A stretch of DNA of 64,000 nucleotides from sequence record ON529853.1; one strand, given 5' to 3'. Positions 6,523 through 29,675 of this stretch are shown here, in pieces. The first letter of the stretch is position 1, and each line of letters begins with the position of its first letter. The translations under genes and the position numbers were made by a program. The notes beneath the pieces were generated by a model. That model was not told where the DNA came from, searched no databases, and was given only the letters and a program-made list of their open reading frames with translations.

Positions 6523-6555
6523 GATAGACCTTTCTGCCGGACGCGCCGGCGGTGA

Positions 6556-6626: not shown

Positions 6627-6663
6627 GTAGGGGTTGATCGTCAGCCATGCTGACAACCATTGT

Positions 6664-6739
6664 TGGTCCTGGCACTCAGATTCGAACTGAGCCATCGTGC
6701 TCCACAAACACGCGCCTCCACCGCAGAGGCTTTACCAGG
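6664..6739 (-). tRNA. trnH: tRNA-His(GTG), no G-1, A73
   Basis: CGTGT-TTGTGGA-GCACG; CCA. Confidence 0.9.
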
Positions 6740-6741
6740 GT

Positions 6742-6829
6742 TGGTCGCGACGACAGGGATCGAACCTGCCCGGCCTCTCGGCCACTACCACCTCAAGGTA
6801 GCGCGTCTACCAGACTCCGCCACGTCGCG
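6742..6829 (-). tRNA. trnL: tRNA-Leu(GAG)
   Basis: CTACC-TTGAGGT-GGTAG; CCA. Confidence 0.93.
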
Positions 6830-6838
6830 ATCGAATGT

Positions 6839-6924
6839 TGGTGCCCGACCCCGGACTCGAACCGGGACGCCACGAGGGCCACGCCTTTTGAGGGCGCTGT
6901 GTCTACCGTTCCAGCCAGACGGGC
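6839..6924 (-). tRNA. trnL: tRNA-Leu(CAA)
   Basis: GCGCC-CTCAAAA-GGCGT; CCA. Confidence 0.93.
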
Positions 6925-6933
6925 AGTGAAAGA

Positions 6934-7020
6934 TGGTGCGGGTGAGAGGATTCGAACCTCCCCGGCACAAAGGCCACGAGTACCTGAGACTCGCGCGGCT
7001 ACCAACTTCGCCACACCCGC
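6934..7020 (-). tRNA. trnL: tRNA-Leu(CAG)
   Basis: CGAGT-CTCAGGT-ACTCG; CCA. Confidence 0.93.
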
Positions 7021-7025
7021 ATTTT

Positions 7026-7108
7026 TGGAGAACCCTGGTGGAGTCGAACCACTTGCGCCTGGATTAAAAGCCCAATCCCGGCCACCCGGATTTAACGCTC
7101 AAGGTCCC
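7026..7108 (-). tRNA. trnK: tRNA-Lys(TTT)
   Basis: TTGGG-CTTTTAA-TCCAG; enlarged D region; CCA. Confidence 0.8.
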
Positions 7109-7120
7109 CTAAAATGATGT

Positions 7121-7211
7121 TGGTGAACGTGGTCGGACTCGCACCGACGATGAAGGTTGTAACCTAACGGGATTAAGAGCCCCGGCCTCTCGCTACTGAG
7201 GTGACACGTCC
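7121..7211 (-). tRNA. trnK: tRNA-Lys(CTT) with long variable arm
   Basis: CGGGG-CTCTTAA-TCCCG; T-loop TGCGAGT; CCA. Confidence 0.8.
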
Positions 7212-7249
7212 AAAACTGTTGTTCTTCTCCTGAAGACTTGATATGTGCA

Positions 7250-7320
7250 TGGAGCCGGCGGACGGTGTCGAACCGTCCCATGTCCACTACGAAAGGTCAG
7301 CCCTGCCACCAGGCGCCGGC
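7250..7320 (-). tRNA. trnT: tRNA-Thr(CGT), weak anticodon stem
   Basis: Perfect acceptor GCCGGCG/CGCCGGC; loop TTCGTAG; CCA. Confidence 0.65.
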
Positions 7321-7328
7321 GTTGTTGT

Positions 7329-7399
7329 TGGTGCCAAGGGAGGGAGTCAAACCCTCGCTGAACCCATACCAAGGGCTCGACCGATCACCCGGCCTTGGC
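7329..7399 (-). tRNA. trnT: tRNA-Thr(GGT)
   Basis: AGCCC-TTGGTAT-GGGTT; CCA. Confidence 0.8.
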
Positions 7400-7407
7400 G
7401 TTGAAGA

Positions 7408-7482
7408 TGGTCGGAACACCGGGATTCGAACCTGGGACCCCTAGCTTCCCGAGCCAGTGCGCTACCGCTGCGCTACATTCCG
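7408..7482 (-). tRNA. trnP: tRNA-Pro(GGG)
   Basis: CTGGC-TCGGGAA-GCTAG (C33); CCA. Confidence 0.88.
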
Positions 7483-7491
7483 ATTTGAAGA

Positions 7492-7568
7492 TGGTCGGCG
7501 AGGGAGGATTCGAACCTCCGATCCCTCCGACCCGAACGGAGTGACTTACCAGACTTGCCCACACGCCG
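7492..7568 (-). tRNA. trnP: tRNA-Pro(CGG)
   Basis: CTCCG-TTCGGGT-CGGAG; CCA. Confidence 0.92.
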
Positions 7569-7577
7569 ATGGAAACG

Positions 7578-7611
7578 AAAAAAGGCCCCGGAGGCTATGC
7601 GCCTGGGGCCT
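7578..7611 (-). terminator. Attenuator terminator upstream of tRNA array 2
   Basis: AGGCCCCAGGC...GCCTCCGGGGCCT followed by a T-run. Confidence 0.9.
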
Positions 7612-7682
7612 GAAACAACTGCTGTTTTGGGATTCAGCAGGTGATCGGCCCCTTAAGGGCGCCTCACCTGCGAGGACTGGAC

Positions 7683-7817
7683 TTAGGGCCAGCCTTCCAA
7701 GGAGACGCCACCGGTGGTGGGGGACTTCGGCGACAGTTTCGTCGGCGCATGCGCGAGCGTCGACAGCGCCGTGGCGGCGGTCGAAAGATGGCTCAGCTTG
7801 TGCGACAAGGTAGTCAC
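7683..7817 (-). CDS. Leader peptide of tRNA array 2, MTTLSHKLSHLSTAATALSTLAHAPTKLSPKSPTTGGVSLEGWP (44 aa, GTG start)
   Basis: Codons 2-35 encode only T/L/S/H/K/A/P, the amino acids of the downstream tRNAs. Confidence 0.85.
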   Translation of the reverse strand: MTTLSHKLSHLSTAATALSTLAHAPTKLSPKSPTTGGVSLEGWP

Positions 7818-7869
7818 GATGAAGGTCCAGTCCGAAGAAGGAGCGCGAATGCGCTGTGATGAAGTCTGA

Positions 7870-7898
7870 TCTCTACAGGAAGCTTGAGCGTATGTCAA
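7870..7898 (-). promoter_or_regulatory. sigma70-type promoter of array 2 leader
   Basis: TTGACA-N17-TAGAGA. Confidence 0.8.
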
Positions 7899-8095
7899 GA
7901 ACTTCAGCAGAAAAAGTTGGTAGAGGGGCTGATCGCGCTTGTCGAGCGACCCTCTCGAAACGCCTTGTGCCAGGATCGGCGGCGATCGTCAACAGGGAAA
8001 ATGCACGCGCGCGGCCGAGGGGGAGCGGAAGACCGCGCGCGTGCCCGGCAGACCGTCGGGGGACGGGGCCTGGGTCGTCGGGGGACGGGGAGGGG

Positions 8096-8332
8096 TCAGC
8101 CGGCGCGGCGCTTGAGCGTCTCGTGCAGCGGCGGATAGGGGACCGGGCCGTAGATCACCTCGACGAGGCGAGGGCGGCGGCCGGTGCGGATTTTGGAAGG
8201 CAGGGGCACGTTGCGGCGCCGCAGTTCGGCGGCGGCGGCGGCGCTCGCCAGGGAGCCTGACAGGTAGACGCCGATCAGTTCGGCGACCGTCAGGGTCATC
8301 ATGCGCTGGGCGCGGGTGGTGTTGTGAGCCAC
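8096..8332 (-). CDS. Hypothetical protein
   Basis: GGAGA RBS; downstream terminator-like hairpin at ~8000-8045. Confidence 0.65.
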   Translation of the reverse strand: MAHNTTRAQRMMTLTVAELIGVYLSGSLASAAAAAELRRRNVPLPSKIRTGRRPRLVEVIYGPVPYPPLHETLKRRAG

Positions 8333-8430
8333 GAGGGTCTCTCCATCTGGATGTGATCCAGGCGGGAGACGCGGTTTCGCGCTGGGTGACCGGTGTGGTC
8401 CCCGTCCTGGAAATTACCAGATGCGAGAGT

Positions 8431-8622
8431 TTAGTCGGAGGGCTTGGCCCCGAAGACCGAGGCGATCGCCGTCAAAGCCTTCTTGACCCGGTTGGGTCGC
8501 TGGGTCAGCGCCGAGGCGCAGACCTTCTTGATTTCGTCGAGGGTGAGCGAGGCCGGGTCACGCAGGCCGCGCGCGGCGATCGAGCCGACGCTGGCGGAGG
8601 TGACTTCGGGGGTGGTGCTCAT
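8431..8622 (-). CDS. Hypothetical protein (63 aa)
   Basis: GAGG RBS directly after tRNA-Asp. Confidence 0.65.
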   Translation of the reverse strand: MSTTPEVTSASVGSIAARGLRDPASLTLDEIKKVCASALTQRPNRVKKALTAIASVFGAKPSD

Positions 8623-8633
8623 GGAAAAACCTC

Positions 8634-8708
8634 TGGCGAGTCCAAGGGGAGTTGAACCCCTCTCTCCACCGTGACAGGGTGGTGTCCTAACCGATAGACG
8701 ATGGACCC
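8634..8708 (-). tRNA. trnD: tRNA-Asp(GTC)
   Basis: CCACC-CTGTCAC-GGTGG; CCA. Confidence 0.93.
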
Positions 8709-8739
8709 GTATCAGAGGGTCGATCCGCAGGAAGATGCT

Positions 8740-8817
8740 TGGAAGGGCGCCGGAGACTCGAACTCCGCTCACTTGGTTGAAAGCCAAGTATCCTGCAAAC
8801 CGCTAGACGAGCGCCCC
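8740..8817 (-). tRNA. trnE: tRNA-Glu(TTC)
   Basis: CTTGG-CTTTCAA-CCAAG; CCA. Confidence 0.92.
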
Positions 8818-8913
8818 ATAAAGCACAGGGCGTCGAACACGAGAGCCGCGATTAGGCGGCGGTCGTATCTCGGCCCTGGAAGGCCTCTCGTTCGTAGCTG
8901 GTCAGACGGTAGG

Positions 8914-9129
8914 TCATTTGGTGCTTGTAACAGAACTGTCGGTGGGTGTCAAGAAGGACGGCGAATCTTTTTTGGCCTTTCGGGCGGGACGATCTTCCTC
9001 GCCCTCAGGCTCGGCCGCGTCCCAGCCCATCCACAGGGCCGCGAGAAAGGCAGGCGGACCCATCAGGGCTTCCAACCGCTTCAAGGCCCGGTCGTTGGCC
9101 GCCAGGAAGGCGTCGCCGTATTCAAGCAT
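8914..9129 (-). CDS. Hypothetical protein (71 aa)
   Basis: GAGGT RBS before ATG at 9129. Confidence 0.55.
   Translation of the reverse strand: MLEYGDAFLAANDRALKRLEALMGPPAFLAALWMGWDAAEPEGEEDRPARKAKKDSPSFLTPTDSSVTSTK
8924..8952 (-). promoter_or_regulatory. Promoter for the Glu/Asp tRNA pair
   Basis: TTGACA-N17-TACAAG. Confidence 0.7.
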
Positions 9130-9269
9130 GGAACCTCGGAGGATACAGGGACAGGCTTCAATGGGCGGCGTTTGACCGCGCCCATCTCGGCGGTAGCAGC
9201 GCACCAGCCCTGCTCGGCTGGCCCCGCCCCTCGTTCCGGCATGTGCCAGGATCGACGGCAAAGGTCAAG

Positions 9270-9577
9270 GGGGGAATTGCGGTGGGTACAGCTTCAACCG
9301 GCCTTGCGGCCTGCGGGTCTTTCGGGCGTCCTGCCCACCGCGCCTACTACGACGCCTTTTTCGGCCCCGGCGCGCCGGAGAAGAAAAATCGACGGGTGAC
9401 CGCTACCGGCCTCGCCTGCTGGCCCGTCCCAGCGCCTGACCTTCTCGACGCGACGCCCTTGTGGGCGTTATGGCCTTCCCGTCCGAAGACAGACGCCGCG
9501 AAGGGTCAGCGGGACCGCATGATCGTCAGCCGCACGGCCAGCGCAGCGAGAGGTTCAGAGGCCTGTCCCGGAAAGAG
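9270..9577 (-). ncRNA. Unknown structured RNA directly downstream of tRNA-Gly
   Basis: Two multibranch domains with long closing stems and UUCG/GAAA/GCAA tetraloops; no credible ORF. Confidence 0.6.
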
Positions 9578-9652
9578 TGGAGCGACTGGTCGGAATCGAA
9601 CCGACGTCCCCAGGTTGGAAGCCTGGTGCTAAGGCCCCTCAGCTACAGTCGC
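9578..9652 (-). tRNA. trnG: tRNA-Gly(TCC)
   Basis: CCAGG-CTTCCAA-CCTGG; U73; CCA. Confidence 0.93.
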
Positions 9653-9666
9653 AGTATAAAACAAGG

Positions 9667-9742
9667 TGGAGCGACTCTCGGGACTCGAACCCGACCCTGC
9701 GCGTTGGCAACGCGTTGTACCCACCCATAATACGTGAGTCGC
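9667..9742 (-). tRNA. trnG: tRNA-Gly(GCC)
   Basis: ACGCG-TTGCCAA-CGCGC; CCA. Confidence 0.9.
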
Positions 9743-9754
9743 ATGGTTAATAAA

Positions 9755-9836
9755 TGGCACGGGTGGAGGGATTCGAACCCCCGACATATGCTGGTTTTGG
9801 AGACCAGTGCCTTGAGCCAGACTTGGCGACACCCGT
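9755..9836 (-). tRNA. trnW: tRNA-Trp(CCA)
   Basis: CTGGT-CTCCAAA-ACCAG; CCA. Confidence 0.92.
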
Positions 9837-12190: not shown

Positions 12191-15100
12191 GCGGTCGCCC
12201 ATACATAGGCCACGGCCAACGCCTCTCGGGCGCTTGGCGCGGGCGCGTCCAGCAGGTTGCCCGTATCGGGCGCGGAAAGGTCACCCACCAACGCCATATC
12301 CGAGGCGCGGGATTGCGGGACGCGGCGCGTCGTCAGGACGGGCGCGACGCCCGTGACGGCGATCATCGCCGCGTGCCAGCCGGCCGAGAGCGTCACAGCC
12401 TGTTCGACCGGCTTAGGTCCGACCGCTCCGGCGGCGGATACCTGGACGCTCAGGGCGACATCACCCGGCGTCTGGGTCGCCGGGTCCCATTGACAGACGC
12501 CGAACCGGATCGTTCCGGCGGACGCCACGGCGGTGGTGACGCCGAAGCGACTGAAGCGGGTCTGACGCGGCAGGAAGAACGGTCGGTAGACCACCTTGCC
12601 GACCGGCGGCTGGTCCGCCGAAGCGTCCAGGCCGCAGTCCGTCAGGTAATGATCCCCGGCGCGGGCCGGCAACAGAACAGGCGCGTCGTACACCGGCGCT
12701 GGTGAGCGCCACGTTCCATCCGCGTAAAGGATGTCCCCCGGCGCGCCGCCTTCGGGAGCCACGCCGCCACGCGCGATCCGCCCGAGCGGGCGCGACTGCA
12801 TCGTACCGCTCTGGTCGGTGGCGAAGAGGAGACCGTCGGTTTCGTTCAGGGCGATTTCCAGGGGCTCAAGCGCGACGGGCACATTGCCCTGCACCAGAGT
12901 GCGTTTATAGCGGATCACCACGCCGCCCGATCCCGAAACGAGCACGCCGTCTCCGTCTTCGACGTAGCCTTCCGGCGGCTGGAGGTAGAGCGTCGGCAAG
13001 GCGCCGGTGGCCGAGGTGCCGCCGGAGCCTTCCGATTCAGGCGGCGACACCAGGATGACGGAATCGCTCAGGTCGCCGTCCACGACCGCCGCCGTCAGTT
13101 CGGCGGCGAAGCCGCGCGGCGGGTTCACATAGATGCGGTCGAAGTAGTTGATGCGGACCAAAGCATTCCGGCTAAACGCCGCCTGGGGCGTGCCGACCAG
13201 AATGAGACCCAGATCACGCGAAACGCTCGCCGTCACCTCGATCAGCGGATCGCCGCTCATGCCGACACGGATCGTTGCGAAAGGCCCGCCCGCCTGCCCG
13301 TTACTGACGATGGCGTTCGCCGCGCCCGTCGCGTCACCCACGGCGAACGCGATCGAGATGTCGTTGTCGAACGGCGCCGTCGTATAGGTGACCGGCAGTT
13401 CGCCCAGACCATCGAGCGTGGTGATCTGAATCGGTCCGCCGAAATCAACGGAGGCCGTTTCATTCGGTCCGCGCAGTTCGCCTTGCGGCGCTTCGGTCCG
13501 CACGATCCAGATGAATTGTTGTCCCGGCGTCGGTTTCCAGCCGGCGCTGCCCTCGGCGAACCCGTCCGGCGGGGTCAGGGAGACCACGCTGTCGACCTCG
13601 CCCACCCACATGTCAGCGACACCCATCTCGCCTTCGATCGGCGAGAGGCTGATTTCCAGCGGGTCGAACATCTCGAACCCGGCGCCAAGGATGTAGTTCA
13701 TCGGCTGGAGCGTGACCGCCAGGGTCTCCTCCAACTTGATATTGGCCCCGGCCTCCAGGTCCACGGTCGGCGGGAAGGGGTAGTAGAGGTCCTCGCCCAA
13801 GCCCGTCACGACGACGGCGTCCGTCTGCGGCTGGCCGCCCAGGTCGCCGGAGACGTAGATGGTGGGCAGGTAGGCGCCGATGCCGCCCTGAGCGGTGGCC
13901 TGCGGGTCCATCATGAGGATGGTTTCGCCCAGGTCCCCCGAGCCTTGAGCGCCCATGGAGATGGCGCCCACAGGGGGAACCACAGTGACTACAGGCAGAG
14001 AACCTGAGGCGTTCGCAGCTTTCGAGCCCTCGCCGGCGCCGACCGTCGAGGTCACCTGGACCGTGCCGATGGACGTGATATTGACCAGCGCCGGAATCGA
14101 CAGGCCGCCCTCGAAGACCGACAGGGCCGCCAGGCCAGGTCCGCCCGCAAACGCCGGTTCCACGAAGAAGTTGGGCGTGCCGCCCACGGCGGTGCCCGGC
14201 AGATAGGAAGGATGGTCGGCCCCCGCCGGCGTGCCCGTCGTCGACGTCTGCGTGACGCCGTCCGTCAGCAGTTCCCCGAGGAAGGCCGAGCCGCCGCCGG
14301 CCGCTCCGGACGCCGTGCCATTGTTGCCTGCCGCGCCGCCGCCGCCATAATAGCCGCCGCCGCCGCCCGCCCCGGAGGCGACGCCGCCTGAGCCGCCCGC
14401 ACCGCCTTCGCTGGCTTCCAGCGGGAAACCGTCGCCGCCGCGCAGATAGGCGCCGTTGCCGTTGCCGCCGGTGTTGGTCGCGCCGACGCCGCCTGCGGTC
14501 TGGCTGCCCCCGGCGCCCGCGTACACGGTGCCGCCGAGGCCGGCGCCGCCGCTCAGGCCGCCGCCGAAGCCGCCGGGACGGGCCGCTACGCCCGCGCCGC
14601 CGCCGCCGCCGCCCGCAATCGCCACCAGCACGCCGTTGCGCCAGACACGGGTCGAGCCGCCGCCGGCCCCCATGGCGTAGCTGCCCGCCCCGCCGCCGCC
14701 GCCGTCAGGCCAGCCGCCGTAAGCGCCCATGAAGTCCCTGGGCGTTGCGCCGCCCTGGCCCACTTCGAACCGCAGGTGGTCGCCAGACTGGAACAGGACG
14801 ACACCGGACAGCAGGCCGCCAGCGCCGCCCAGCGAGGTGCGGGCGATCGTATTGTTGACGAGTTGCGAGGCCGAACCGCCGCCGCCCCACAAGGTGAGAT
14901 TGACGCCCCCCTCGAAGGTCGTGATGTAGTCACGAGAGCCTTGGCGGTCTCCCGGCAGGAGGGTCTCGCCGAGCGTCAGCGGGGCCAGAGCCGCGCCGGG
15001 CGCGAACTCCATAACTGCGCGGCCGTCACCGCCTGGAAGGATGGTGGCCTTCAGCGCCTGCGCGCCGCCAACGCCCACACCGGCGACGTAGTCGACGTCG

Positions 15101-18100
15101 TTTTGACGCGGGGGGTTGCGCCCCGCGCCGCTTTCAAGGCGGTGATTGTAAGCCTGCGGACCGCCGTAGCTGGACCCGCCGCCGGCGCCGCCGGCGGTGG
15201 CCGCCGCCAGATTGAGCCCAGCCGCGCCGCCGTAGTAGCCGCCGCCGCCGCCGGGGCCAGCGGCCGCCGCCGCCGCCGTATCAGCGGTCGACCCGTCCGG
15301 GTAGCCGTGGCCGCCGTAAAGGTAGGCTCCGGTCGAGATCGAGGTCGGCAGCCGCGTGCGCACCAATCCGCCGCGATAATCCCGTCCGCCGCCGCCGATC
15401 GTGTTCGACGGGCCAACGCCGGTCACACCAATGCGGGCGCCGCCTGCACCGCCATCGCCGGGGACGGCGGCCGAATACCAGCTATTGCCGCCGCCGCCGC
15501 CGGCCGCCACCAATTGCAGGACGCCGTTGACCCAGACGCGCGAGGAACCGCCGCCCGACCCCGCCAGGTTGGTCCCGGCCGCCTCGTACTTGCCGCCGCG
15601 ACCGCCATCAGGCCAGCCGCCCAGGCCTGCGGCCATGTCCGTCGGCGCCGGCGCGCCGCCGCCCGAGGCGACATCGACTTGAACGATGTCGCCGGGCTTG
15701 ACCAGGAACTCCGCCTGGCTGAAGGCGCCGGCGCCCGCGACCCCAGGCGTCGTGACCGTCCCGCGCACTGCTCCCGAGCCGCCGCCGCCCCACAACTTGA
15801 CCGTCAGGAGGCCGGCGGTGGTGACTTTGAACAACCGTTCGGAACGGATGCAGTCGAGCGCGGTCTTGCCCGTGGGCAGATCGAGCGGGATCAGATAGTT
15901 GAGAACGGCGAGGCCGTCGCCGCCTGGCGCGGGATTCTGGGCCAGGGTGGTGGTGCCGCCGGACCCGAGCGAGGTGCCCGCGACAAATCCAGGGACGCCG
16001 GTCCCGCCCAGCCCGACGACGCCTGACCCGTTCGCGGGGATCAGGTGGGAGCCGCCGCCGGCCGATCCCGCGATGCCTGCGGTGTTCGCCGTGCCGGAAC
16101 CGCCGCCATAGTAGCCGCCGCCGCCGCCCGGTCCGGTCGTCAGGCCGTTGCCCAAGGAGCCCGTGCTGTAGCGGGCGTTGTTGACCCGGAAGCCGTTGCC
16201 GCCCCGGAGATAGCCGCCGCTGTAGGAGGCGTCGGCTGGGGCGGCGGTGTTGACGCCGCCTGCGGACTGCGTGCCGCCGGTGCCGTATTTCAGGTTGAGG
16301 TTGTTGGTGGGGCCGCCGTTGGCGCCGCCGCCCGCGCCGCCGGCCTCGGCCACAGAGGACCCGCCGCCGCCGCCACCGCCACCGCCGGCGACCATAATGA
16401 GGACGTCGTTTTTGTAGAGACGCGTCGAGCCGCCGCCACCGCCCCAGCCGACCGCGCCGGAGAGGCGCGCGCCGTCGCCGCCGTCAGGCCAGCCGCCCCG
16501 GCCGCCGCCGGTCGGGGAGAAGGCTTGACCCCCTTGGCCGACCTCGACCCGCAGGCTGTCGCCAGGGTCGACATCCACGGCCGCACTGACGTACCCGCCA
16601 GCGCCGCCAGCGCGGAACGTGCCGACCGTGGGTCCGGCGCCGCCGCCGCCCCACAGATTGACGTTGATCGTGCCCTTCTGGGTGATCGTGATCGTGCGCG
16701 CCGTCGCCGTATGGCTGAAGACGTTGGTGCCCTGGACCAGAGTGGTCGGCTCAAGCGGGGTCGCCGGAGGGGTCTCATCGAACCGGATGAAGACCTGGCC
16801 GTCTCCGCCCATGGTGACCCAGGGCTGCGTGAGGACGGCGGACGCACTGGCGGGGCGCGCGACGCCCGTGACGTATTCAGGCAGGTCCGCGCCGGGCGGC
16901 GTGACCGTGAGGCTGGCCGTCGCATTGGTGCTGTTCTCAGGCGCCAGCGAGGAACCGCCGCCGCCGCCGCCGGCGACCGTGACAGCGCCAGCGAGCGTAT
17001 CGCAGCCGCCGCCGCCGCCGTAGTAGCCGCCGCCGCCGCCAGGCCCCATCCCTTCGCCGACGGACTCCGGCGACCCGCCGGTCGGATAGCCGTTGCCGCC
17101 CTGGAGGTAGCCGCCGGTGTAGGAAGTGTCGGCCGGGTAGGCCTTGTTGGTGCCGCCCGCCGTCTGCGTTCCGCCCCGCCCATTGGCGAGGTTGCCGTTG
17201 TTGTTCGGGCTGCCCTCTCCGCCCGTCTCGCCGCCGCCGCCGCCGCCCGTCGCCGTATTGAGACCGGCGCCGGCCGCGCCCGCGCCGCCGGCGACCGCCA
17301 GCAGACTGCTGTTGAAGTAAATCCGCGTCGAGCCGCCGCCGCCGCCCCAACCGATCGCCGTGGAGCCCATGGCGCCGTTGCCGCCGTCGGGCCAGCCGCC
17401 CAGACCGCCCGCCGTGGGGGTCGGACCTCGCCCGCCTTGCGCAACCTGGAAGCTGAAGGTGTCGCCCGGCACGACGTTGCGGGTGAACGAAACCATGCCG
17501 CCCGCGCCGCCGTTGGCGAGCGTACCCGTGCCCGCCACGCCGCCCGCACCCGCGCCCCAGGCGCGGATCGTCACCTTACCAGGCTTGGTGGCGGTCCAGG
17601 TCTGAACCTCGGCCCCCGTGTAGAGGCGCGTCCGTTCAGGCGCAACGGTCTGCTTGGCGACAAGCGCCAACACCGCCAGACCGTCGCCGCCATTCGTCGT
17701 GGTGGCGAGGTTCGTGGTGCCGTAACCGCTGGATGCAACGCCCGCAATGTAGTCAGGGTCCGTGGCGTTGGGGGCGCCGTTCGAGCCGGTGGTGGAGGCG
17801 GCGCCGGTCTCCGTGCCGCCCACCTTGCCATTGTTCCAGCGCAGCGTGTAGCCGTCGTATCCGGGATGGACGTAGCTGGAGCCGCCGGCGGACCCCGCGC
17901 CGGAGCCGCCGGAGCCGCCGCCGTAATAACCGCCGCCGCCGCCGCCGCCATTGCGGGTGTCAGCGGTGGTCCGATCCTGCCCCTCGCCGTAGCCGTGCCC
18001 GCCGCGCAGCAGCCCGCCCGTGGCGACCGCGTCGCCGTAGCGGCCGACCGCGAAACCGCCCGCCGCCTGGGAGCCGCCTGCGCCGTAGTTGGCGCCGCCG

Positions 18101-20337
18101 CCGTACTCGCCGTAGTAGTAGCCGCCGGAGCCGCTGTAAGATGCGCCGCCGACGCCGCCGCCCGCGCCCGCGACCGCCACAAGCACGTCGTTGATGTAGA
18201 TGCGCGTCGAGCCGCCGCCGCCGCCGCCGCAATAGGACGTCGAGGCGTAACCGCCGTGGCCGCCGTCGGGCCAGCCGCCGAGGCCGCCTTCAGTGATCGC
18301 CGAGGGCTTGCGCCCGCCTTGGCCCACTTCGACCTTGACGGTGTCGCCGGCCTTGACCGGGATCGCGACGTGCGTGAAGCCGCCCGCGCCGGCGTAGCGG
18401 GTGCCCGAGGTGCTGTATCCGCCCGCGCCGCCCGCGCCCCAAAGCTTGGCTTCCAGGAGAGAATCCTGAGCGACCGTGTATTCCTTGGCGGCCCCCTGGA
18501 AAGCGAGGGAGGTCTTGCCGGACGGCAACTCAGGCGTGGGCGGCGGCGGTTCGACGCTCAGGATCGCGAGGCCGTTGCCGCCGGGAGCCGCCTGGTTCGT
18601 GGGCGCGCTCTGCGGAGAGCCGACCGCCACGCCAGCGACGTAATCCGGGTCCGACGTCGACGGCGGGGTGGGTCCCGTGCCTTTGGTCAGTACCGCAAGA
18701 TCAACGGTGGGATGCGTGTAGGACGAGCCGCCGCCAGCGCCGGAAGAGTTGGTGGACGCCAGGCCCGACGACCCGCCGCCGCCATAATAGCCGCCGCCGC
18801 CGCCCGCGCCCACGTTGCCGCTGGAGTTGGAGGTCGTGACCGGATAGGAGACGCCGCCGCCCGAACCGCCTTTCAGGTAGCCGCCCGAGGACTGGACGTC
18901 GGTCGTGCGTTGCAGGTTGACGCCGCCCGCGCTCTGCGAGCCGCCGGTGCCGCGCCAGGCGCCGTTCGTCTCGCCGTCCGAGGCGACCAAACCGCCGCCC
19001 GCGCCGCCGTAGCCGCGCGACGACGTCGAATTTTCATTGACGCTGCCGCCGCCGCCGCCGCCCGCCACGGCGATCAGGGCACCGTTGCGATACAGGCGCG
19101 TAGAACCGCCGCCGGAGCCTGCGGAGCGGGTGTCCTGCTGGAAGCCGCCGCGCCCGCCGTCGGGCCAGCCGCCGTTGCCTGCGCCCGAGCCGATGGCGCC
19201 GTTATTGGAGCCGCCTGAAGCGACTTCCAGGGTCAGGATGTCGCCGGCGCTGAAGCGCGCTACGCCCGAGACGAAGCCGCCGGGACCGCCGTAAGAGGCT
19301 TCGCGCGAAACGATGACGGAGCCGCCCGACCCGCCGCCGCCCCACAGCTTGAAGGCGATCTGACAATCCTGCGGGATTTCGTAGGTCTTGGCCGAGCCCG
19401 TGTAGGGCATGGCGTGCTTGTTGCCCGGCTCGAAGCTGGGCGGAGCAGGCGGCGCGCCCAGTTCCAGGACCGCCAGGCCGTGGCCGGCGGGGAGCGCCAT
19501 GACGCCCGTGGAGCCGTTGTTGGCCCCGACCGCGACGCCGGCGACGTAGTCAGCGTCGTCTTGCTTCGGCGGCGTTTTACCGACGCCGCCGATGTTGGCG
19601 GGGGATTCGACCGTGGGGGCGAGATACGATGAACCGCCGCCAGCGCCCGACGACAGGTTGGTGGTCCATTGGCCGGAGCCGCCGCCACCGCCATAATAGC
19701 CGCCGCCGCCGCCACCGCCGTTCTTGTTGTCGCCGTTACCGAAGAAGCCGGAGCCGCCCTTGCGCGCCGCGCCCTGCTTGGCGGCGTTGTTGGACGGGTT
19801 GGAGAACCCGCCCGCTGACTGCGTGCCGCCCAGGCCTGCCCAACCCGCCGTCCCGAAGCCGTCTTGTCCCACGAGACCGCCGCCGGCGCCGGAGTAACCC
19901 AGGGCCACCGTGGTGCCGGTTTCATTGTGGTTGGCGCCGCCGCCGCCGCCCGCGATCGCCACCAGGACGTCGTTGATGTAGAGGCGCGTCGAGCCGCCGC
20001 CGCCGCCTGCGGCGCGAATGGTGAAGGCGTAACCCCCTTCGCCGCCGTCAGGCCAGCCGCCCGGCGAGGTTTTGGTGCCGGTGAGGGGATCGGTGGTTCC
20101 GCCGCCCCCGACCTCGACCTTGACGACGTCGCCGGCCGCCACCAGAATCAGACCCGAGACCCAGCCGCCGGCGCCGCCGTAGCCGACGCGGGGCGCAACG
20201 TTCGAGGCGTTCGAACCGCCGCCGCCGCCGCCCCACAGCTTGAAGGTCAGCGCGCCGGCCGAAGCGGCGGTGAAGGTCTGGGCGGCGCCGGTGAAGCTGA
20301 CCTTGGTTTTGCCGGTGGTAAGATCAGCCATCAGCAA
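12187..20337 (-). CDS. Giant glycine-rich repeat virion protein (2716 aa, seven ~300-aa repeats)
   Basis: Seven repeats with (L/A)WG(G/A)G, GGWPDGG, GGGS(T/S)R, GGGYYGGG motifs; distinct C-terminal region. Confidence 0.85.
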   Translation of the reverse strand: MLMADLTTGKTKVSFTGAAQTFTAASAGALTFKLWGGGGGGSNASNVAPRVGYGGAGGWVSGLILVAAGDVVKVEVGGGGTTDPLTGTKTSPGGWPDGGEGGYAFTIRAAGGGGGSTRLYINDVLVAIAGGGGGANHNETGTTVALGYSGAGGGLVGQDGFGTAGWAGLGGTQSAGGFSNPSNNAAKQGAARKGGSGFFGNGDNKNGGGGGGGYYGGGGGSGQWTTNLSSGAGGGSSYLAPTVESPANIGGVGKTPPKQDDADYVAGVAVGANNGSTGVMALPAGHGLAVLELGAPPAPPSFEPGNKHAMPYTGSAKTYEIPQDCQIAFKLWGGGGSGGSVIVSREASYGGPGGFVSGVARFSAGDILTLEVASGGSNNGAIGSGAGNGGWPDGGRGGFQQDTRSAGSGGGSTRLYRNGALIAVAGGGGGGSVNENSTSSRGYGGAGGGLVASDGETNGAWRGTGGSQSAGGVNLQRTTDVQSSGGYLKGGSGGGVSYPVTTSNSSGNVGAGGGGGYYGGGGSSGLASTNSSGAGGGSSYTHPTVDLAVLTKGTGPTPPSTSDPDYVAGVAVGSPQSAPTNQAAPGGNGLAILSVEPPPPTPELPSGKTSLAFQGAAKEYTVAQDSLLEAKLWGAGGAGGYSTSGTRYAGAGGFTHVAIPVKAGDTVKVEVGQGGRKPSAITEGGLGGWPDGGHGGYASTSYCGGGGGGSTRIYINDVLVAVAGAGGGVGGASYSGSGGYYYGEYGGGANYGAGGSQAAGGFAVGRYGDAVATGGLLRGGHGYGEGQDRTTADTRNGGGGGGGYYGGGSGGSGAGSAGGSSYVHPGYDGYTLRWNNGKVGGTETGAASTTGSNGAPNATDPDYIAGVASSGYGTTNLATTTNGGDGLAVLALVAKQTVAPERTRLYTGAEVQTWTATKPGKVTIRAWGAGAGGVAGTGTLANGGAGGMVSFTRNVVPGDTFSFQVAQGGRGPTPTAGGLGGWPDGGNGAMGSTAIGWGGGGGSTRIYFNSSLLAVAGGAGAAGAGLNTATGGGGGGETGGEGSPNNNGNLANGRGGTQTAGGTNKAYPADTSYTGGYLQGGNGYPTGGSPESVGEGMGPGGGGGYYGGGGGCDTLAGAVTVAGGGGGGSSLAPENSTNATASLTVTPPGADLPEYVTGVARPASASAVLTQPWVTMGGDGQVFIRFDETPPATPLEPTTLVQGTNVFSHTATARTITITQKGTINVNLWGGGGAGPTVGTFRAGGAGGYVSAAVDVDPGDSLRVEVGQGGQAFSPTGGGRGGWPDGGDGARLSGAVGWGGGGGSTRLYKNDVLIMVAGGGGGGGGGSSVAEAGGAGGGANGGPTNNLNLKYGTGGTQSAGGVNTAAPADASYSGGYLRGGNGFRVNNARYSTGSLGNGLTTGPGGGGGYYGGGSGTANTAGIAGSAGGGSHLIPANGSGVVGLGGTGVPGFVAGTSLGSGGTTTLAQNPAPGGDGLAVLNYLIPLDLPTGKTALDCIRSERLFKVTTAGLLTVKLWGGGGSGAVRGTVTTPGVAGAGAFSQAEFLVKPGDIVQVDVASGGGAPAPTDMAAGLGGWPDGGRGGKYEAAGTNLAGSGGGSSRVWVNGVLQLVAAGGGGGNSWYSAAVPGDGGAGGARIGVTGVGPSNTIGGGGRDYRGGLVRTRLPTSISTGAYLYGGHGYPDGSTADTAAAAAAGPGGGGGYYGGAAGLNLAAATAGGAGGGSSYGGPQAYNHRLESGAGRNPPRQNDVDYVAGVGVGGAQALKATILPGGDGRAVMEFAPGAALAPLTLGETLLPGDRQGSRDYITTFEGGVNLTLWGGGGSASQLVNNTIARTSLGGAGGLLSGVVLFQSGDHLRFEVGQGGATPRDFMGAYGGWPDGGGGGAGSYAMGAGGGSTRVWRNGVLVAIAGGGGGGAGVAARPGGFGGGLSGGAGLGGTVYAGAGGSQTAGGVGATNTGGNGNGAYLRGGDGFPLEASEGGAGGSGGVASGAGGGGGYYGGGGAAGNNGTASGAAGGGSAFLGELLTDGVTQTSTTGTPAGADHPSYLPGTAVGGTPNFFVEPAFAGGPGLAALSVFEGGLSIPALVNITSIGTVQVTSTVGAGEGSKAANASGSLPVVTVVPPVGAISMGAQGSGDLGETILMMDPQATAQGGIGAYLPTIYVSGDLGGQPQTDAVVVTGLGEDLYYPFPPTVDLEAGANIKLEETLAVTLQPMNYILGAGFEMFDPLEISLSPIEGEMGVADMWVGEVDSVVSLTPPDGFAEGSAGWKPTPGQQFIWIVRTEAPQGELRGPNETASVDFGGPIQITTLDGLGELPVTYTTAPFDNDISIAFAVGDATGAANAIVSNGQAGGPFATIRVGMSGDPLIEVTASVSRDLGLILVGTPQAAFSRNALVRINYFDRIYVNPPRGFAAELTAAVVDGDLSDSVILVSPPESEGSGGTSATGALPTLYLQPPEGYVEDGDGVLVSGSGGVVIRYKRTLVQGNVPVALEPLEIALNETDGLLFATDQSGTMQSRPLGRIARGGVAPEGGAPGDILYADGTWRSPAPVYDAPVLLPARAGDHYLTDCGLDASADQPPVGKVVYRPFFLPRQTRFSRFGVTTAVASAGTIRFGVCQWDPATQTPGDVALSVQVSAAGAVGPKPVEQAVTLSAGWHAAMIAVTGVAPVLTTRRVPQSRASDMALVGDLSAPDTGNLLDAPAPSAREALAVAYVWATA

Positions 20338-26275: not shown

Positions 26276-26824
26276 TTACTTGACCTTGCGACCGCGACGG
26301 GGGGTCTTGGCGACGGTGGTCGTGTCGGCGGCGTCTTCGACAGCCGGGACGTCGATGGCGTCTTCATCGTCCAGGTCGGAGGCGTCTTCCGCCGGGGCGG
26401 CGGAGAAGTCCTTGACGGCGGGCTCCGGCAGATGCGCGGCGGCGGCGGCCGCTGCGGCGGCCTTGGCCTGCACCTCAGCCTGAGCGACCAGCGCGGCTTG
26501 AGCGGCGGCGGCTTCCAGGGCTTGTTGCTGGGCGATCGCTGCGGCCATGGCGGCTTGCTGCTGTTGCAGGGCCTGGGCGGCCTGGGACGCGGCCGGCGAC
26601 TGACCATTCTCGTCCTTGCCGGTGGCGCGGTCGAGCACGCGCTGCGAGGGCGCGGGGCCTTCCGGCGGGGTCACGGTGGCGAAGGGGGCGTAGGCGGCGG
26701 GGTTCGCCGGCACGAAGCGCGACCAGGTGTAACCGGCGCCCACGACGAGGTCACGCGCGTTGGGGCGGGTGTGCTTCTCGGGGTTGCCGTTGGGGTCGTA
26801 GATGATGACGGTGTTGTCGGCCAT
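26276..26824 (-). CDS. Hypothetical protein with Ala/Gln-rich helix
   Basis: Start MADNTV; biased codon use. Confidence 0.75.
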   Translation of the reverse strand: MADNTVIIYDPNGNPEKHTRPNARDLVVGAGYTWSRFVPANPAAYAPFATVTPPEGPAPSQRVLDRATGKDENGQSPAASQAAQALQQQQAAMAAAIAQQQALEAAAAQAALVAQAEVQAKAAAAAAAAAHLPEPAVKDFSAAPAEDASDLDDEDAIDVPAVEDAADTTTVAKTPRRGRKVK

Positions 26825-27037
26825 GTGCGGCGTAAATCCTGCGTATCGGGTAGATGCGAAAAAGGGCGCAGTCGAGCCGCGCGAGACTAGGCTTTCTGGC
26901 ATGAATCCTGCTCAAAGTCAAGATTTCCAGCACTGAGCGCCAGGAATCACGGCAATGGGAGTCCCCTTCGTCGCGACGCCGGCTCGATCCACATATCCAC
27001 AACAGCGACGCTTCTGTGGATAAGTCAGGATTCCTGA

Positions 27038-27066
27038 TTGACGGCTCAGGGCGACCCCGCTAAATC
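27038..27066 (+). promoter_or_regulatory. Caulobacter sigma73-consensus promoter
   Basis: TTGACG-N15-GCTAAATC (17-nt spacer to TAAATC). Confidence 0.85.
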
Positions 27067-27071
27067 CCTAA

Positions 27072-27585
27072 TCGTCGCTTCGGAAACGGAGCGGCCGGCA
27101 ACCGGGCCTCGGCCCGACTAGCCGGGCTCTGAAGGGTATGCAGTCCTGGACTGATCCTGACAGAGTTGAAGCCGGACGCCGGGGTGACCCGGTCCATCCG
27201 CCGAGACATGGTATCTCAAGGCTGCCGCAGCCCAAGAGACCGATCCTCGGGCCGCCAAAGGTCGTAAGACTGATGGTCAGGCGCATCAGCCGGTCGGCGC
27301 AGCGATGTGACGATGGGTCCTAAGGCGCCACGGACTTCGCACCCTCGGGTGCGGGAGCCAAGGCGTAGAGATGCAGTTCAGGGCCTTCGGGCTGTGGTTC
27401 TGTAGGTCAAGTCCAGCCACGGCGACGTGGGCGGCCCGCTGACCCCACCTTCTTCGGGGAAACCTGATGCCCTGGTGGACTCTCCCGCCCCTCGCTGTAA
27501 TGGCGCAGGACGGGCGCGACGTCGAACCAGAACCAGATTGTCGGGAAGGCCCGCCTCGTATCTCCGGATGCAGGCGGGCCTTTTG
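27072..27585 (+). ncRNA. Large structured non-coding RNA (~510 nt), family unassigned
   Basis: Own promoter and terminator; 5'/3' closing helix; more than ten hairpins with GNRA/UUCG loops; no credible ORF. Confidence 0.75.
27546..27585 (+). terminator. Intrinsic terminator of the ncRNA
   Basis: AAGGCCCGCCT...AGGCGGGCCTT then TTGCGTTT. Confidence 0.85.
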
Positions 27586-27589
27586 CGTT

Positions 27590-28021
27590 TCAGCCCTCAG
27601 GCGCCGCAGCGATCACCAGGGTGTAGGGGTACTGGACGGTGGTCACCCCGATCTGCACGCCCACCATGATAGTGATGGCGGTCTCGGCGAGTTCGACCAT
27701 AAACCCCGTCCCCACAATATAGGCGAAGCCTTCCTCATCCACGATGATGCGGCCGTCCTCGGTGAGGAACATGAAGCGTCCGCCGGCGTCGTCGATCAGG
27801 CTATAGTTGGCCCAGGGCTGATCCACCTTGACCATGGCGACGCCGTGCGCGGCGGACGTCTTGTCGACCAGGGGATGCAGGGGGTGAATCTCATAGCCGG
27901 TGATGGACGGCGCGAGGCCGAAGCCTACGCTGGCGCCGCGCACGTTGCGCTGGCTCTGCGGGGTCGTGGCGTGGTGATGGCGCGCGAGCGCCTGGAGGTC
28001 GATTTGGTAGGTGTGGGCCAC
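27590..28021 (-). CDS. Hypothetical protein
   Basis: Clean ORF downstream of capsid genes. Confidence 0.7.
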   Translation of the reverse strand: MAHTYQIDLQALARHHHATTPQSQRNVRGASVGFGLAPSITGYEIHPLHPLVDKTSAAHGVAMVKVDQPWANYSLIDDAGGRFMFLTEDGRIIVDEEGFAYIVGTGFMVELAETAITIMVGVQIGVTTVQYPYTLVIAAAPEG

Positions 28022-28179
28022 GGAATGTCCTGAGAGAATCTCGAAAGGGGTGATCGGCCGCTACCCGATCCGACGCCGTTCGACCCTATGTCCTGGCCGG
28101 CGTCCGCGCTGCGCGGTCCCACAGGCCTGGCGGCCTGACTCATATTTACCCAGCGCAGGGTGTAGATGCGCTGCAAAAG

Positions 28180-28210
28180 AAAAGGGCCGCCCCTTGCGGA
28201 GCGGCCCAGT
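28180..28210 (-). terminator. Terminator of capsid transcript
   Basis: GGGCCGC hairpin followed by TTTTCTTTT on the minus strand. Confidence 0.8.
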
Positions 28211-28235
28211 CTTTACCCGAAGGCGAAGGCCTGGA

Positions 28236-28661
28236 TTAGGCCTTCGAGTTCGGTCCGGCGAACGCGTAGTACGAAACCGTACCGCTCGCTTCGACTTCCG
28301 CGTAAACGCGGATGCCAGCGGCGTCGGCGTCAGCCGCAGCCAGGGTGGCGGGGTCGAACTTCAGCACGAAGGTCTTGCCGGCGACGGCAGTGACCGTGCC
28401 ACCGGGGGCGTCGACCGGGTTGGCGCCAGCGGCGTCAACGGTCTGGACCTTGATGGTGGCGTCCGTGGCCGCGTCGACGACGATGACGACGTCGAACGGC
28501 GTTTGGCCGTACAGGTTCTTCAGGTCGCCGCGACCAGCGGTCAGGCGGTGAAGGTCGACCACGAGGCCGCCGGCGGCCGAGGCCGTGACAGCGGTAGCGC
28601 GATCATCGATCGAACGGAGCGCCAGAAGGGCGTCATAACCGTGCTTGATCTTGGAGTTCAT
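28236..28661 (-). CDS. Minor capsid/decoration protein
   Basis: Follows the major capsid gene; strong codon bias; phiCbK-like synteny. Confidence 0.75.
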   Translation of the reverse strand: MNSKIKHGYDALLALRSIDDRATAVTASAAGGLVVDLHRLTAGRGDLKNLYGQTPFDVVIVVDAATDATIKVQTVDAAGANPVDAPGGTVTAVAGKTFVLKFDPATLAAADADAAGIRVYAEVEASGTVSYYAFAGPNSKA

Positions 28662-28739: not shown

Positions 28740-29675
28740 TTAGGCGACGACGGCAGCCTTCTTGATGCCCCAGACGCGAGCGGCGGCGCGGCCCGACAGC
28801 ACCGCGAGGCTGATCAGCCACTCGATGCGGGTACGGTAGACGGGCTTGTCGTTGACTTGGCCGAGGTCGTCGACTTCCATCACGCCGTTTTGCAGGCCCA
28901 TGACGCCCGAGTCGCCGATGTTCACGACGTAGATCGAGGTGCCGACAGCGGCGCCGCCACCGGGGTTCGCTTCATTGAAGTCGATGACCTGGGTGTTGGT
29001 GTCGTCGTAGTCGGTGGTCAGGATGGGCAGGTCGTTGTAGAACGCGATGCGCTCGCCGAACTCGTTCTTGTCCCAGGTGATGAAGCCGGCAACCGACGTC
29101 TGACGCGAAGCGGCCGACAGCAGGTTACGCATGCGCTTCGACATGATCAGGTGCGTGGCACCGTCAACGGCGTCGATGGCTTCGTCCAGGACTTGCAGCG
29201 ACAGAGCGTCGCCGCCCGACGAGGCGCCGGCCGGGATCAGTTGGTCGCCGACGATGCGCTTGCGCAGGCCGTCGAATTCACGCGGATCGGCTTCCGAGTC
29301 GCCGGTGATGATCTTGCCAGCCAGGAAGAGCGAGAGGGCCTTGACCTTCATCTTCTCCTGCATGGTGCGGATGTTCGCGCCATGGGTCTTGATCAGGGCC
29401 TTGTCGACGTCCAGGTCGCCGCCAACAATCTTCAGGACTTCGACCTGCGAGTTGATGACGCCGACGCCGTTGCCGTAAGCTTCGTTGAAGCCACGGAACG
29501 CAACGCCCGGCAGTTGGCCTTCTTGGGTGTAGGTGTACGAGCCACCCGGAACATCCATGAACGGCAGGACCTTCAGGAGGTCCGGATAGGCGAAGAGTTC
29601 GATGATCGCCGAACGCTTGACCTCGTCGTTGCCCATCGCCAGATCGGCGGCTTCGAGCAGAGTGAGAGCAGCCAT
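28740..29675 (-). CDS. Major capsid protein
   Basis: LPGVAFRGFNE, GGDLDVDKAL, EFDGLRKRI, YRTRIEW motifs of phiCbK-type capsid proteins; extreme codon bias. Confidence 0.92.
   Translation of the reverse strand: MAALTLLEAADLAMGNDEVKRSAIIELFAYPDLLKVLPFMDVPGGSYTYTQEGQLPGVAFRGFNEAYGNGVGVINSQVEVLKIVGGDLDVDKALIKTHGANIRTMQEKMKVKALSLFLAGKIITGDSEADPREFDGLRKRIVGDQLIPAGASSGGDALSLQVLDEAIDAVDGATHLIMSKRMRNLLSAASRQTSVAGFITWDKNEFGERIAFYNDLPILTTDYDDTNTQVIDFNEANPGGGAAVGTSIYVVNIGDSGVMGLQNGVMEVDDLGQVNDKPVYRTRIEWLISLAVLSGRAAARVWGIKKAAVVA

Follow-up and report, generated by a model that had tools for sequence, protein, structure and literature searches.

A candidate new family of large structured non-coding RNA in giant phages of Brevundimonas pondensis

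Non-coding RNAs (ncRNAs) of more than 450 nt that combine an elaborate conserved fold with an unknown function are, to our knowledge, rare, with OLE, GOLLD, ROOL and a few others making up the list. The large ornate RNAs that have been studied have each proved unexpected, for example as RNA nanocages or as membrane-associated ribonucleoproteins (RNPs). ROOL and GOLLD are large (>450 nt), intricate RNAs of phages and prophages, encoded as independent units with many helices and conserved loops, and they set the precedent for RNA-only assemblies among phage RNAs (bioRxiv 10.1101/2024.12.08.627333). OLE RNA (RF01071), of ~600 nt, is similarly ornate and rich in conserved internal loops, and works by scaffolding an RNP and not through base pairing, while phi29 pRNA (RF00044) is a phage structural RNA with its own promoter, whose gene lies with morphogenesis functions and which works through its fold and its oligomerization. 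Here we describe an RNA gene that resembles these systems in such features. It occupies positions 27038-27590 on the + strand, promoter through terminator, of a 64-kb stretch of DNA (hereafter, the window) that forms the final 64 kb of the record of Brevundimonas phage vB_BpoS-Bambus (ON529853.1), to which a 751-nt query showed 100% identity; window position 26900 corresponds to record position 311000. Bambus belongs to the Dolichocephalovirinae, has a genome of 348,100 bp and infects B. pondensis LVF1.

Our analysis establishes this interval as a stand-alone ncRNA gene with a secondary structure under purifying selection and a predicted transcript of ~510 nt. The gene has the features by which stand-alone ncRNA genes are generally recognized, namely its own promoter, an intrinsic terminator, a covarying structure and no conserved reading frame. 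The best explanation overall, to which we assign a probability of roughly 0.6, is that it encodes a stand-alone structured RNA, which may act in trans through its fold.

The comparison rests on a small set of relatives. When 50,697 phage records were searched with blastn (65-70% sensitivity), the RNA region was found in only seven, always in the same slot and orientation. These phages fall into three divergence groups: Bambus and Marchewka (99%); Kabachok, Papperlapapp and Domovoi (~84%); and Gurke and Kikimora, in which blastn aligns only the two ends of the RNA to Bambus, the middle being too diverged. The seven carriers, obtained from one sewage plant on one host species, are exactly the B. 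pondensis isolates of at least 300 kb described by Friedrich et al. 2023, who reported transfer RNAs (tRNAs; 24 for the phage genome) and no other RNA gene (PMC10070969).

Local folding of each of the three groups led to one and the same succession of hairpins, set between anchors of invariant sequence. We curated a consensus structure on the five closely alignable sequences, derived covariance models of its 5' half (R1) and 3' half (R2), and used these to align Gurke and Kikimora, which matched over the full model length with 84-90 and 68-70 bits. Across the 83 pairs of the 5' half, 93.3% of alignment cells were paired and 24 pairs showed double changes, compared with 27-46% and 2-3 double changes when the 3' partner was slid by 1-3 columns; for the 82 pairs of the 3' half, the corresponding values were 91.8% and 23, compared with 34-44% and 2-5. 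Altogether, 49 pairs carried compensatory double changes, as opposed to 2-5 per half in the slid controls. Run without supervision, RNAalifold returned 39 compensatory pairs from a plain MAFFT alignment, and applied to the merged alignment it recovered 155 of 165 curated pairs. Similarly, random placing of the observed paired-column substitutions left 134 +/- 2.4 pairs intact for Kabachok and 91 +/- 4.6 for Gurke, whereas 151 and 126, respectively, were observed. Covariation among syntenic homologues, which the original prediction (a first reading of the window made from its letters) had proposed as a check, is strong by both the slid-control and the substitution tests, and we consider the model of the secondary structure well supported.

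Several signals indicate that the fold belongs to the + strand. This strand folds at -256.5 kcal/mol with z = -4.4 relative to shuffled sequences, compared with z = -2.3 for the minus strand; G-U cells (130) exceed A-C cells (21), which points to the + strand, and GNRA loops occur on that strand only. As the structure was derived on the + strand, these observations serve as corroboration rather than proof.

A coding frame is not conserved in the region, in agreement with the original prediction of an island without a credible open reading frame (ORF). In Bambus, the longest open stretches of the RNA gene span 49-100 codons. Four stops in Bambus and Marchewka, and two in Gurke, interrupt the + frame that the Kabachok group leaves open, the indels between groups are of 1 nt, and the 96 substitutions separating Bambus from Kabachok are distributed 35/31/30 over the codon positions, without periodicity.

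The curated structure comprises 170 bp in 14 helical elements with two perfect four-way junctions, in the order A-B-C-[Q:D,E,F]-H-I-[P:J,K,M(L)]-N-tail-terminator (Table 1). Hairpins A and B (27074-27124) form the most conserved, nearly invariant block and are 100% paired in the seven sequences, with one compensatory pair, G-C to A-U, closing A. In the first junction domain, hairpins D, E and F are 84-97% paired and include 16 pairs with double changes. Helix Q, which closes them, was the top non-annotated stack in the exhaustive search; it is 94% paired, compared with 31-66% for slid partners, and shows 2 double changes (3 with the flanking pair). For hairpin H, independent local folds agree across the three groups. 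In the second domain, hairpin K is built in three tiers and hairpin L ends in a GAAA loop, with 9 double-change pairs in K and M; hairpin N adds 3 more, including C-G to U-A between Bambus and Kabachok. Six hairpins have conserved GNRA tetraloops: in A (GAAA/GUAA), D (GUGA), H (GCGA/GCAA), K (GCGA/GUGA) and L they persist in every group over changing stems, and the loop of F is of the GNRA type (GUAA) in two groups. The linker that follows H was considered as part of an 11-nt GNRA receptor and rejected: the opposing UAUGG strand is missing, and Gurke reads CCAGAG in place of CCUAAG.

This structure retains most of the hairpins first picked out in the window. Nine of the 11 belong to it (GCUUCG-GAAA-CGGAGC, GGGC-CUCG-GCCC, CAGUC/GACUG, CCGGG/CCCGG, GGCUG/CAGCC, GUC-GUAA-GAC, CGCACCC/GGGUGCG, GCC-UUCG-GGC and GUGG/CCAC). 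The other two fall away: CUGAUG/CAUCAG clashes with the conserved hairpin F and helix Q and is missing in Gurke, and GGGCGG/CCGCCC is non-complementary in the Kabachok group. The proposed pairing of the ends, CGUCGC with GCGACG, is likewise abandoned, given a mismatch in Kabachok, the absence of a counterpart in Gurke and the place of its 5' strand within the conserved hairpin A.

The last 19 nt of the tail, CCAGAACCAGAUYGUCGGG, are invariant except for one base, and there are two candidate helices by which the tail may close the molecule. In the one predicted by RNAalifold, the 5' end, AAUC (27070-73), is paired with GAUU (27536-39). Alternatively, CGGCRA (27096-27101) could pair with UYGUCG (27538-43), in which case the sole variable tail base covaries with the A/G at 27100, giving A-U in Bambus and Kabachok and G-C in Gurke. 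To form, this second helix has to compete with the outer stem of B, which is invariant, and these GC-rich sequences hold about ten chance helices of comparable length.

A separate observation concerns the origin of the molecule. In the Kikimora RNA, the 3' half (L007 2442-2651) was also matched by the 5'-half model R1, weakly but over its full length (20 bits, E = 4e-4); together with the repeated layout of hairpin, four-way junction and hairpin, this hints that the RNA may have arisen by internal duplication.

Table 1. Features of the RNA gene and its control region in the Bambus window (window coordinates).
Feature	Position	Strand	Description
Inverted pair of DnaA-box-like sites	26985-27023	both	GATCCACA and TATCCACA on +; perfect TTATCCACA on - at 27015-27023
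Promoter -35	27038-27043	+	TTGACG; read from the sequence
Promoter -10	27059-27066	+	GCTAAATC; read from the sequence; 15-nt spacer from -35
Hairpin A	27074-27095	+	9 bp; GAAA/GUAA loop
Hairpin B	27096-27124	+	4+4 bp; CUCG loop
Hairpin C	27125-27167	+	Long, three-tier; 17 pairs, 93-100% paired, 5 changed on both sides
Four-way junction domain 1	27168-27287	+	Helix Q closing D, E and F; no linker nt between arms
Helix Q	27168-27172 with 27283-27287	+	Found by RNAalifold (merged alignment) and exhaustive stack search
Hairpin D	27173-27200	+	GUGA loop
Hairpin E	27201-27250	+	Arm of junction domain 1
Hairpin F	27251-27282	+	GUAA loop
Hairpin H	27289-27318	+	8+4 bp; GCGA/GCAA loop; followed by linker CCUAAG 27319-27324
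Hairpin I	27325-27366	+	5+2+8 bp; CUCG loop; 15 pairs, 100% of cells paired, 5 double changes
Four-way junction domain 2	27367-27483	+	Helix P closes J, K and M; M carries L; no linker nt
Helix P	27367-27370 with 27480-27483	+	AGAG with CUCU; invariant; minimum-free-energy fold of Bambus and RNAalifold
Hairpin N	27484-27514	+	4+5 bp; loop with conserved GUAA
Tail	27515-27545	+	31 nt; unpaired in the model
Intrinsic terminator	27546-27590	+	11-bp stem, bulged C, 5-bp stem, UCCG/UUCG loop, then UUUUGCGUUU

The promoter and the terminator that bracket the structure were both part of the original prediction and stand as described there, the promoter elements and their spacer exactly so. We take the promoter (27038-27066) to represent the Caulobacter housekeeping (sigma-73) consensus, TTGACGS-N10-14-GCTANAWC. 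It is kept in all seven phages, and the relaxed motif TTGACN{14,18}CTANAWC occurs once in the 64 kb, both strands considered, compared with 0.05 occurrences expected. Transcription would start at about 27070-27074. The terminator hairpin, 37 nt long (27546-27582) with the loop UCCG in Bambus, is conserved, with 98% of its 16 pairs maintained and 2 compensatory double changes. A simple terminator scan did not list it, an omission probably explained by its bulge and length.

Upstream of the promoter lies the inverted pair of DnaA-box-like sites, whose arms, ATCCACA and TCTGTGGATAA, are invariant in the seven phages, while the spacer between them differs in both length and sequence. The nearest arm ends 15 bp upstream of the -35 element. 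The arrangement ATCCACA-N-TGTGGAT occurs only here in the 64 kb (0 expected), and two of the four window matches to TTATCCACA at no more than one mismatch fall at this pair. We take TTATCCACA, the minus-strand reading of the second arm, to be the classical DnaA box, the assignment to DnaA being by consensus only. The pair is probably a protein-binding operator or activator site.

Other elements of the surrounding DNA deserve mention in their own right. The sequence AAGTCAAGATTT (window 26910-26930; Gurke L003 ~1925-1960) is common to the Bambus and Gurke groups in otherwise unalignable DNA; it lies ~95-100 nt upstream, in the minus sense, of the phrog_10854 gene, its minus strand contains TTGAC, and the Gurke copy belongs to an inverted repeat GTCAAG-N8-CTTGAC. 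AAGTCAAGATTT may be part of a promoter of the divergent head genes, in which case the 120-bp control region would serve both directions. The Kabachok group carries an extra insert of ~210 bp just upstream of the box pair (L002 2004-2300; likewise L005 and L006), which contains its own promoter-like TTGACG...GATCTAAATC, a perfect 12-bp inverted repeat (TCTCGATCTAAA/TTTAGATCGAGA) and a 56-aa ORF of no family, and which constitutes a second small + strand unit ahead of the RNA gene. Finally, a blastn search with a 601-nt Gurke query (E <= 1) revealed a second matching place in ON529850.1 and ON529857.1 (Gurke and Kikimora), distinct from the region of the promoter and DnaA boxes, which is single-copy.

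The RNA gene lies within a 687-nt stretch that holds no annotated Bambus gene. It runs antisense in the head module, on the strand opposite its neighbors as had been noted at the outset, between two minus-strand coding sequences (CDSs) at 26276-26902 and 27590-28021, both labeled "hypothetical." The major capsid gene (28740-29675, minus) is 1.2 kb away. The left neighbor belongs to phrog_10854 and the gene after it is a "head protein" of phrog_240, while the right neighbor, of 143 aa, has no family and is present in Bambus and Marchewka only; the gene 3' of the RNA varies between the divergence groups. Among the neighboring proteins, all of them head or unknown, RNA-related domains are absent. 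Downstream of the RNA, no + strand ORF or gene precedes the terminator, and a convergent gene follows it. A riboswitch or cis-regulatory leader was rejected on this layout of terminator and convergent gene, as a regulated + strand gene is missing downstream.

Regarding the left neighbor, the 5' end of the 208-aa CDS (26276-26902, minus) is probably over-extended over window 26824-26902. Its homologues in Gurke and Caulobacter phages align only from residues 22-31 onward, Met27 (ATG at 26824) begins the conserved MADNTVIIYDP..., and a minus-strand hairpin with a T-run (26882-26866) falls inside the extension. Further away, a tRNA island at window 571-9836, ~17 kb from the RNA gene, comprises at least 15 genes for tRNAs, every one of them on the minus strand, and the 6 kb at window 14001-20000 have a G+C content of 0.73-0.74, compared with 0.63-0.68 around them, and a negative GC skew, unlike the remaining window.

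Across the Dolichocephalovirinae, accessory cargo has a hot spot in the slot that follows the minor capsid gene and its terminator (window 27590-28236; L012 2387-2818, L013 1923-2818 and L015 1932-2828). This slot holds the 143-aa ORF in Bambus, a 311-aa ORF in Kabachok and Gurke, a 298-aa ORF in Bajun, the antisense gp083 (phrog_1987) in CcrColossus and two antisense ORFs in CcrPW, and it is empty in phiCbK. In Domovoi (L006 ~2915-3260), the RNA terminator and the minor capsid gene are separated not by a gene, as elsewhere, but by ~350 bp of non-coding DNA in its place, with a direct repeat of ~35 nt present twice (CATATTTACCCAGCGCGGGGCGTAAACGCGCTGC) and a GC-rich hairpin also present twice (GGCCGCCCCTTTCGAGGCGGCC).

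Beyond the seven carriers, the covariance models found no match in the syntenic slots of CcrColossus, CcrPW, phiCbK and Bajun, in ten IMG/VR contigs with capsid proteins 48-93% identical, or elsewhere in the 64-kb window. The slot is compact in phiCbK and in both IMG/VR loci with ORFs listed; it contains different antisense protein genes in CcrColossus and CcrPW, and a sense gene in Bajun. Because the slots of related phages are compact or hold other genes, and give no model match, the RNA gene behaves as an accessory cassette acquired by the lineage of B. pondensis giant phages.

Five exact-motif scans, covering IMG/VR, JGI metagenomes and 185,579 species genomes, yielded no homologue. Viral contigs with CCAGAACCAGATNGTCGGG, with CTAGCCGGG..GGGGTGACCC and with GGGAAACC..CAGAACCAGAT amounted to 4, 3 and 21 loci, none of which showed further blastn similarity, and GGGAAACC-N-CCAGAACCAGATNGTCGG gave 0 matches in genomes and metagenomes. 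The 5' block pattern CGGAGCGGNCGGCNACCGGGCC matched 48 and 47 loci (~95), nearly all GC-rich, which we take to be chance matches in GC-rich DNA. The only recurring match lies in the leader of rplM (ribosomal protein L13) in Pseudoxanthobacter and Segnochrobactrum, where the 5'-half model scored 13-17 bits on a match preselected by the pattern. This leader, seen also in a related metagenome-assembled genome, contains CGCGGAGCGGACGGCAACCGGGCCnnGGCCCG, with ~28/33 nt equal to the boundary of hairpins A and B (L088 2540-2640, L102 770-860, L070 10225-10320 and L117). It was rejected as a homologue, as nothing is shared beyond this boundary and the match is probably a coincidence; with no Rfam family covering it, it represents an unannotated conserved leader in its own right.

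Taken as a structured RNA that acts in trans, the gene suggests the following course of events. Unmodified host RNA polymerase would transcribe it from the consensus housekeeping promoter and, since this promoter corresponds to the host consensus, the RNA would probably be made from the first minutes of infection, with the DnaA-box-like pair just upstream probably tuning the promoter. Transcription would end at the strong intrinsic terminator, ahead of the convergent head gene, and the transcript would fold into the ~170 bp of hairpins A, B and C, the junction closed by Q, hairpins H and I, the junction closed by P, hairpin N, the tail and the terminator. Compact tertiary folds are assembled from elements such as GNRA loops and coaxially stacked four-way junctions, and the two junctions together with GNRA contacts could give this RNA a compact tertiary structure. 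That it acts through its three-dimensional shape, as a protein-binding scaffold, a decoy or a self-assembling particle like ROOL and GOLLD, is a tentative proposal that we hold at somewhat less than even odds; it draws on the GNRA and junction architecture, the lack of a neighboring regulated gene and the lack of a conserved adjacent partner gene. Its role would lie in the takeover of Brevundimonas pondensis by the phage and not in virion structure.

A bolder and rather doubtful extension would make this RNA the founding member of a new class of large ornate RNAs peculiar to giant alphaproteobacterial phages. It would consist of two tandem modules (hairpin, perfect four-way junction, hairpin) and form a defined RNA-only or RNA-protein particle, or be a new ribozyme; its synthesis would be coupled to the host replication initiator DnaA, and it would serve the phage in disabling or exploiting a host function specific to B. 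pondensis.

Several points weigh against a trans-acting structured RNA. Both the start site and the 3' end are read from the sequence, and tertiary contacts, multimerization and a protein partner are purely conjectural. No variation occurs in helices P and B or in most of A, so that covariation speaks neither for nor against them. The Gurke rows were fitted to a model built on the proposed structure, which favors that structure, and the covariation counts derive from three independent lineages, equivalent to two divergence events, and do not carry significance of the R-scape type. In addition, the narrow distribution fits a host-specific accessory role or, equally, a young element of modest importance.

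Among the alternatives, a base-pairing riboregulator survives best, although we consider it unlikely. The invariant tail would provide the seed for host or phage mRNAs, and the body would stabilize the RNA or bind a chaperone. As in Hfq-type small RNAs (sRNAs), this tail, the longest unpaired invariant stretch, lies directly 5' of the terminator hairpin and its U tract. However, a search of the 64-kb window for a site complementary to the tail found none besides the tail itself, the conserved body of ~480 nt and 170 bp far exceeds the known needs of base-pairing sRNAs, and the tail may instead close the molecule.

Less probable again is a role in cis or as antisense, in which the RNA gene and its terminator would insulate or attenuate minus-strand late head transcription, or the RNA would pair with read-through transcripts for cleavage. 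The antisense position in the head module would suit such a role, as would the slot, which follows a strong minus-strand terminator (28207-28184) behind the minor capsid gene; a terminator is annotated at the same point in phiCbK and CcrColossus. Nevertheless, insulation requires a promoter and a terminator only, not 170 covarying bp with conserved GNRA loops, the G-U asymmetry reflects selection on the + strand RNA itself, and relatives with a compact slot manage without the RNA.

We give the same low standing to a ribozyme, acting for instance on phage tRNA precursors or another RNA. Large ribozymes typically have such a size, several GNRA loops and junctions of multiple helices, and of the 24 tRNAs of the phage the window holds at least 15. 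With bacterial RNase P RNA type A (RF00010), in particular, the Bambus RNA shares the size class, several GNRA hairpins and two strings resembling regions I and V; the likeness of these strings (AGCCGGGCUC; CAGAACC...) to the conserved regions is faint, judged by eye and useful as a lead only. Nevertheless, no RNase P, intron or small-ribozyme model matched at E <= 10 in the three groups. RNase P itself was rejected: no match to RF00010, RF00011 or RF00373 appeared at that threshold, the candidate P4 strands pair at only 5/8 positions by inspection and cannot form that helix, and one of the two strings sits in the covarying hairpin C and is not conserved in Gurke. Group I and II introns and small self-cleaving ribozymes were likewise dismissed, with no Rfam match, a promoter and terminator of the gene's own and no interrupted ORF.

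A replication-linked transcript is very improbable. In this scenario the DnaA boxes would mark an origin or DnaA site, and the RNA would be a primer, an R-loop or an activator in the manner of ColE1 RNA II or ori-lambda. The perfect TTATCCACA and two near-matches within 40 bp, invariant in all seven phages and directly upstream of the promoter, could be read in this way. Against it, the GC skew does not change sign at the RNA locus, which led us to reject an origin of replication there, an AT-rich unwinding element is not evident, and the strong terminator ends a transcript which, as a primer, would not need such conservation of RNA structure.

Slighter still is the chance that the RNA is a divergent member of ROOL, GOLLD, OLE, RNase P or transfer-messenger RNA (tmRNA) beyond the reach of the Rfam models, even though it shares size class and phage origin with ROOL and GOLLD. 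At the gathering threshold, Rfam 15 returned only 15 tRNAs across the whole window. With cmscan in E-value mode to 10 and permissive filters, the locus in Bambus, Kabachok and Gurke gave nothing below E = 1 in the RNA and only chance matches, none of them shared between groups, for three sequences as divergent as 60% identity. ARAGORN found no tRNA and no tmRNA in 26500-28200, and tmRNA, including the two-piece alphaproteobacterial form, was discarded on this result and on the negative Rfam tmRNA models. The RNA also lies away from the tRNA island, and no common conserved motif was seen. The family search suggested in the original prediction (ROOL, GOLLD, OLE, introns and RNase P) was run without finding a family, and the idea that the RNA might be a new class, not assignable to ROOL or GOLLD, is the supported interpretation that survives, because no membership of ROOL, GOLLD, OLE, RNase P or introns is detectable. 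We regard it as belonging to no detectable known family and as a candidate for a new class, whose known distribution is very narrow.

The weakest reading takes the region for a protein-coding gene, as annotated in Kabachok and Domovoi. CDSs of 639-645 nt, KABACHOK_04620 (L002 2268-2906) and DOMOVOI_05190 (L006 2268-2912), were placed over the RNA gene by the depositors, and the Kabachok group does have a + frame of 173 codons open across the region. Open frames of this kind can be expected at 65% GC, a minus frame there is equally open throughout, and Papperlapapp, with the same sequence, has no CDS annotated. Given also the stops in Bambus, Marchewka and Gurke, the 1-nt indels and the absence of a third-position excess, a protein gene is barely credible and both CDSs are very likely spurious.

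On these findings, a new family of large structured RNAs in phages has a bona fide candidate here. It is carried by cultivable phages of a cultivable and non-pathogenic host, B. pondensis LVF1, and three natural sequence variants already map its helices, which makes genetic and structural study directly feasible. It may also represent a case of a phage promoter wired to host DnaA. Public annotation is corrected as well, as two records show a spurious protein at the locus and five show nothing. Interest is tempered by the distribution over seven genomes, three lineages and one sampling site.

The comparison with the systems introduced above places this RNA among large ornate RNAs while setting it apart from each. 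OLE is chromosomal, occurs in extremophilic Firmicutes and is flanked by the OapA/B/C genes, whereas the Bambus RNA has no conserved adjacent partner gene; membership was rejected in the absence of an RF01071 match, with neighbors that are head or unknown proteins. The phi29 pRNA, of 120-174 nt with two domains and intermolecular loop pairing, belongs to small podophages with protein-primed DNA, unlike the Bambus RNA. A pRNA of this type was also rejected, since RF00044 gave no match and phages whose capsid proteins are 77-93% identical lack the RNA; a "pRNA" match in Rfam at E = 1 falls on the wrong strand and concerns the NoRC RNA of eukaryotes, which is unrelated. As close relatives with a 90% identical capsid protein do without it, the Bambus RNA is not a core part of packaging. 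Membership of ROOL (RF03087) or GOLLD (RF01998) was excluded by the lack of a covariance-model match in the three groups. For ROOL and GOLLD, pseudoknots and quaternary assembly are described, whereas the Bambus RNA is known from the sequence of only seven genomes. It also falls short of the length of the 659-nt ROOL example and of GOLLD, many members of which exceed 800 nt. While ROOL and GOLLD are found in Firmicutes or in rumen and lake metagenomes, often beside phage tRNA islands, the Bambus RNA belongs to phages of Alphaproteobacteria and sits in the head module, ~17 kb from the tRNA genes.

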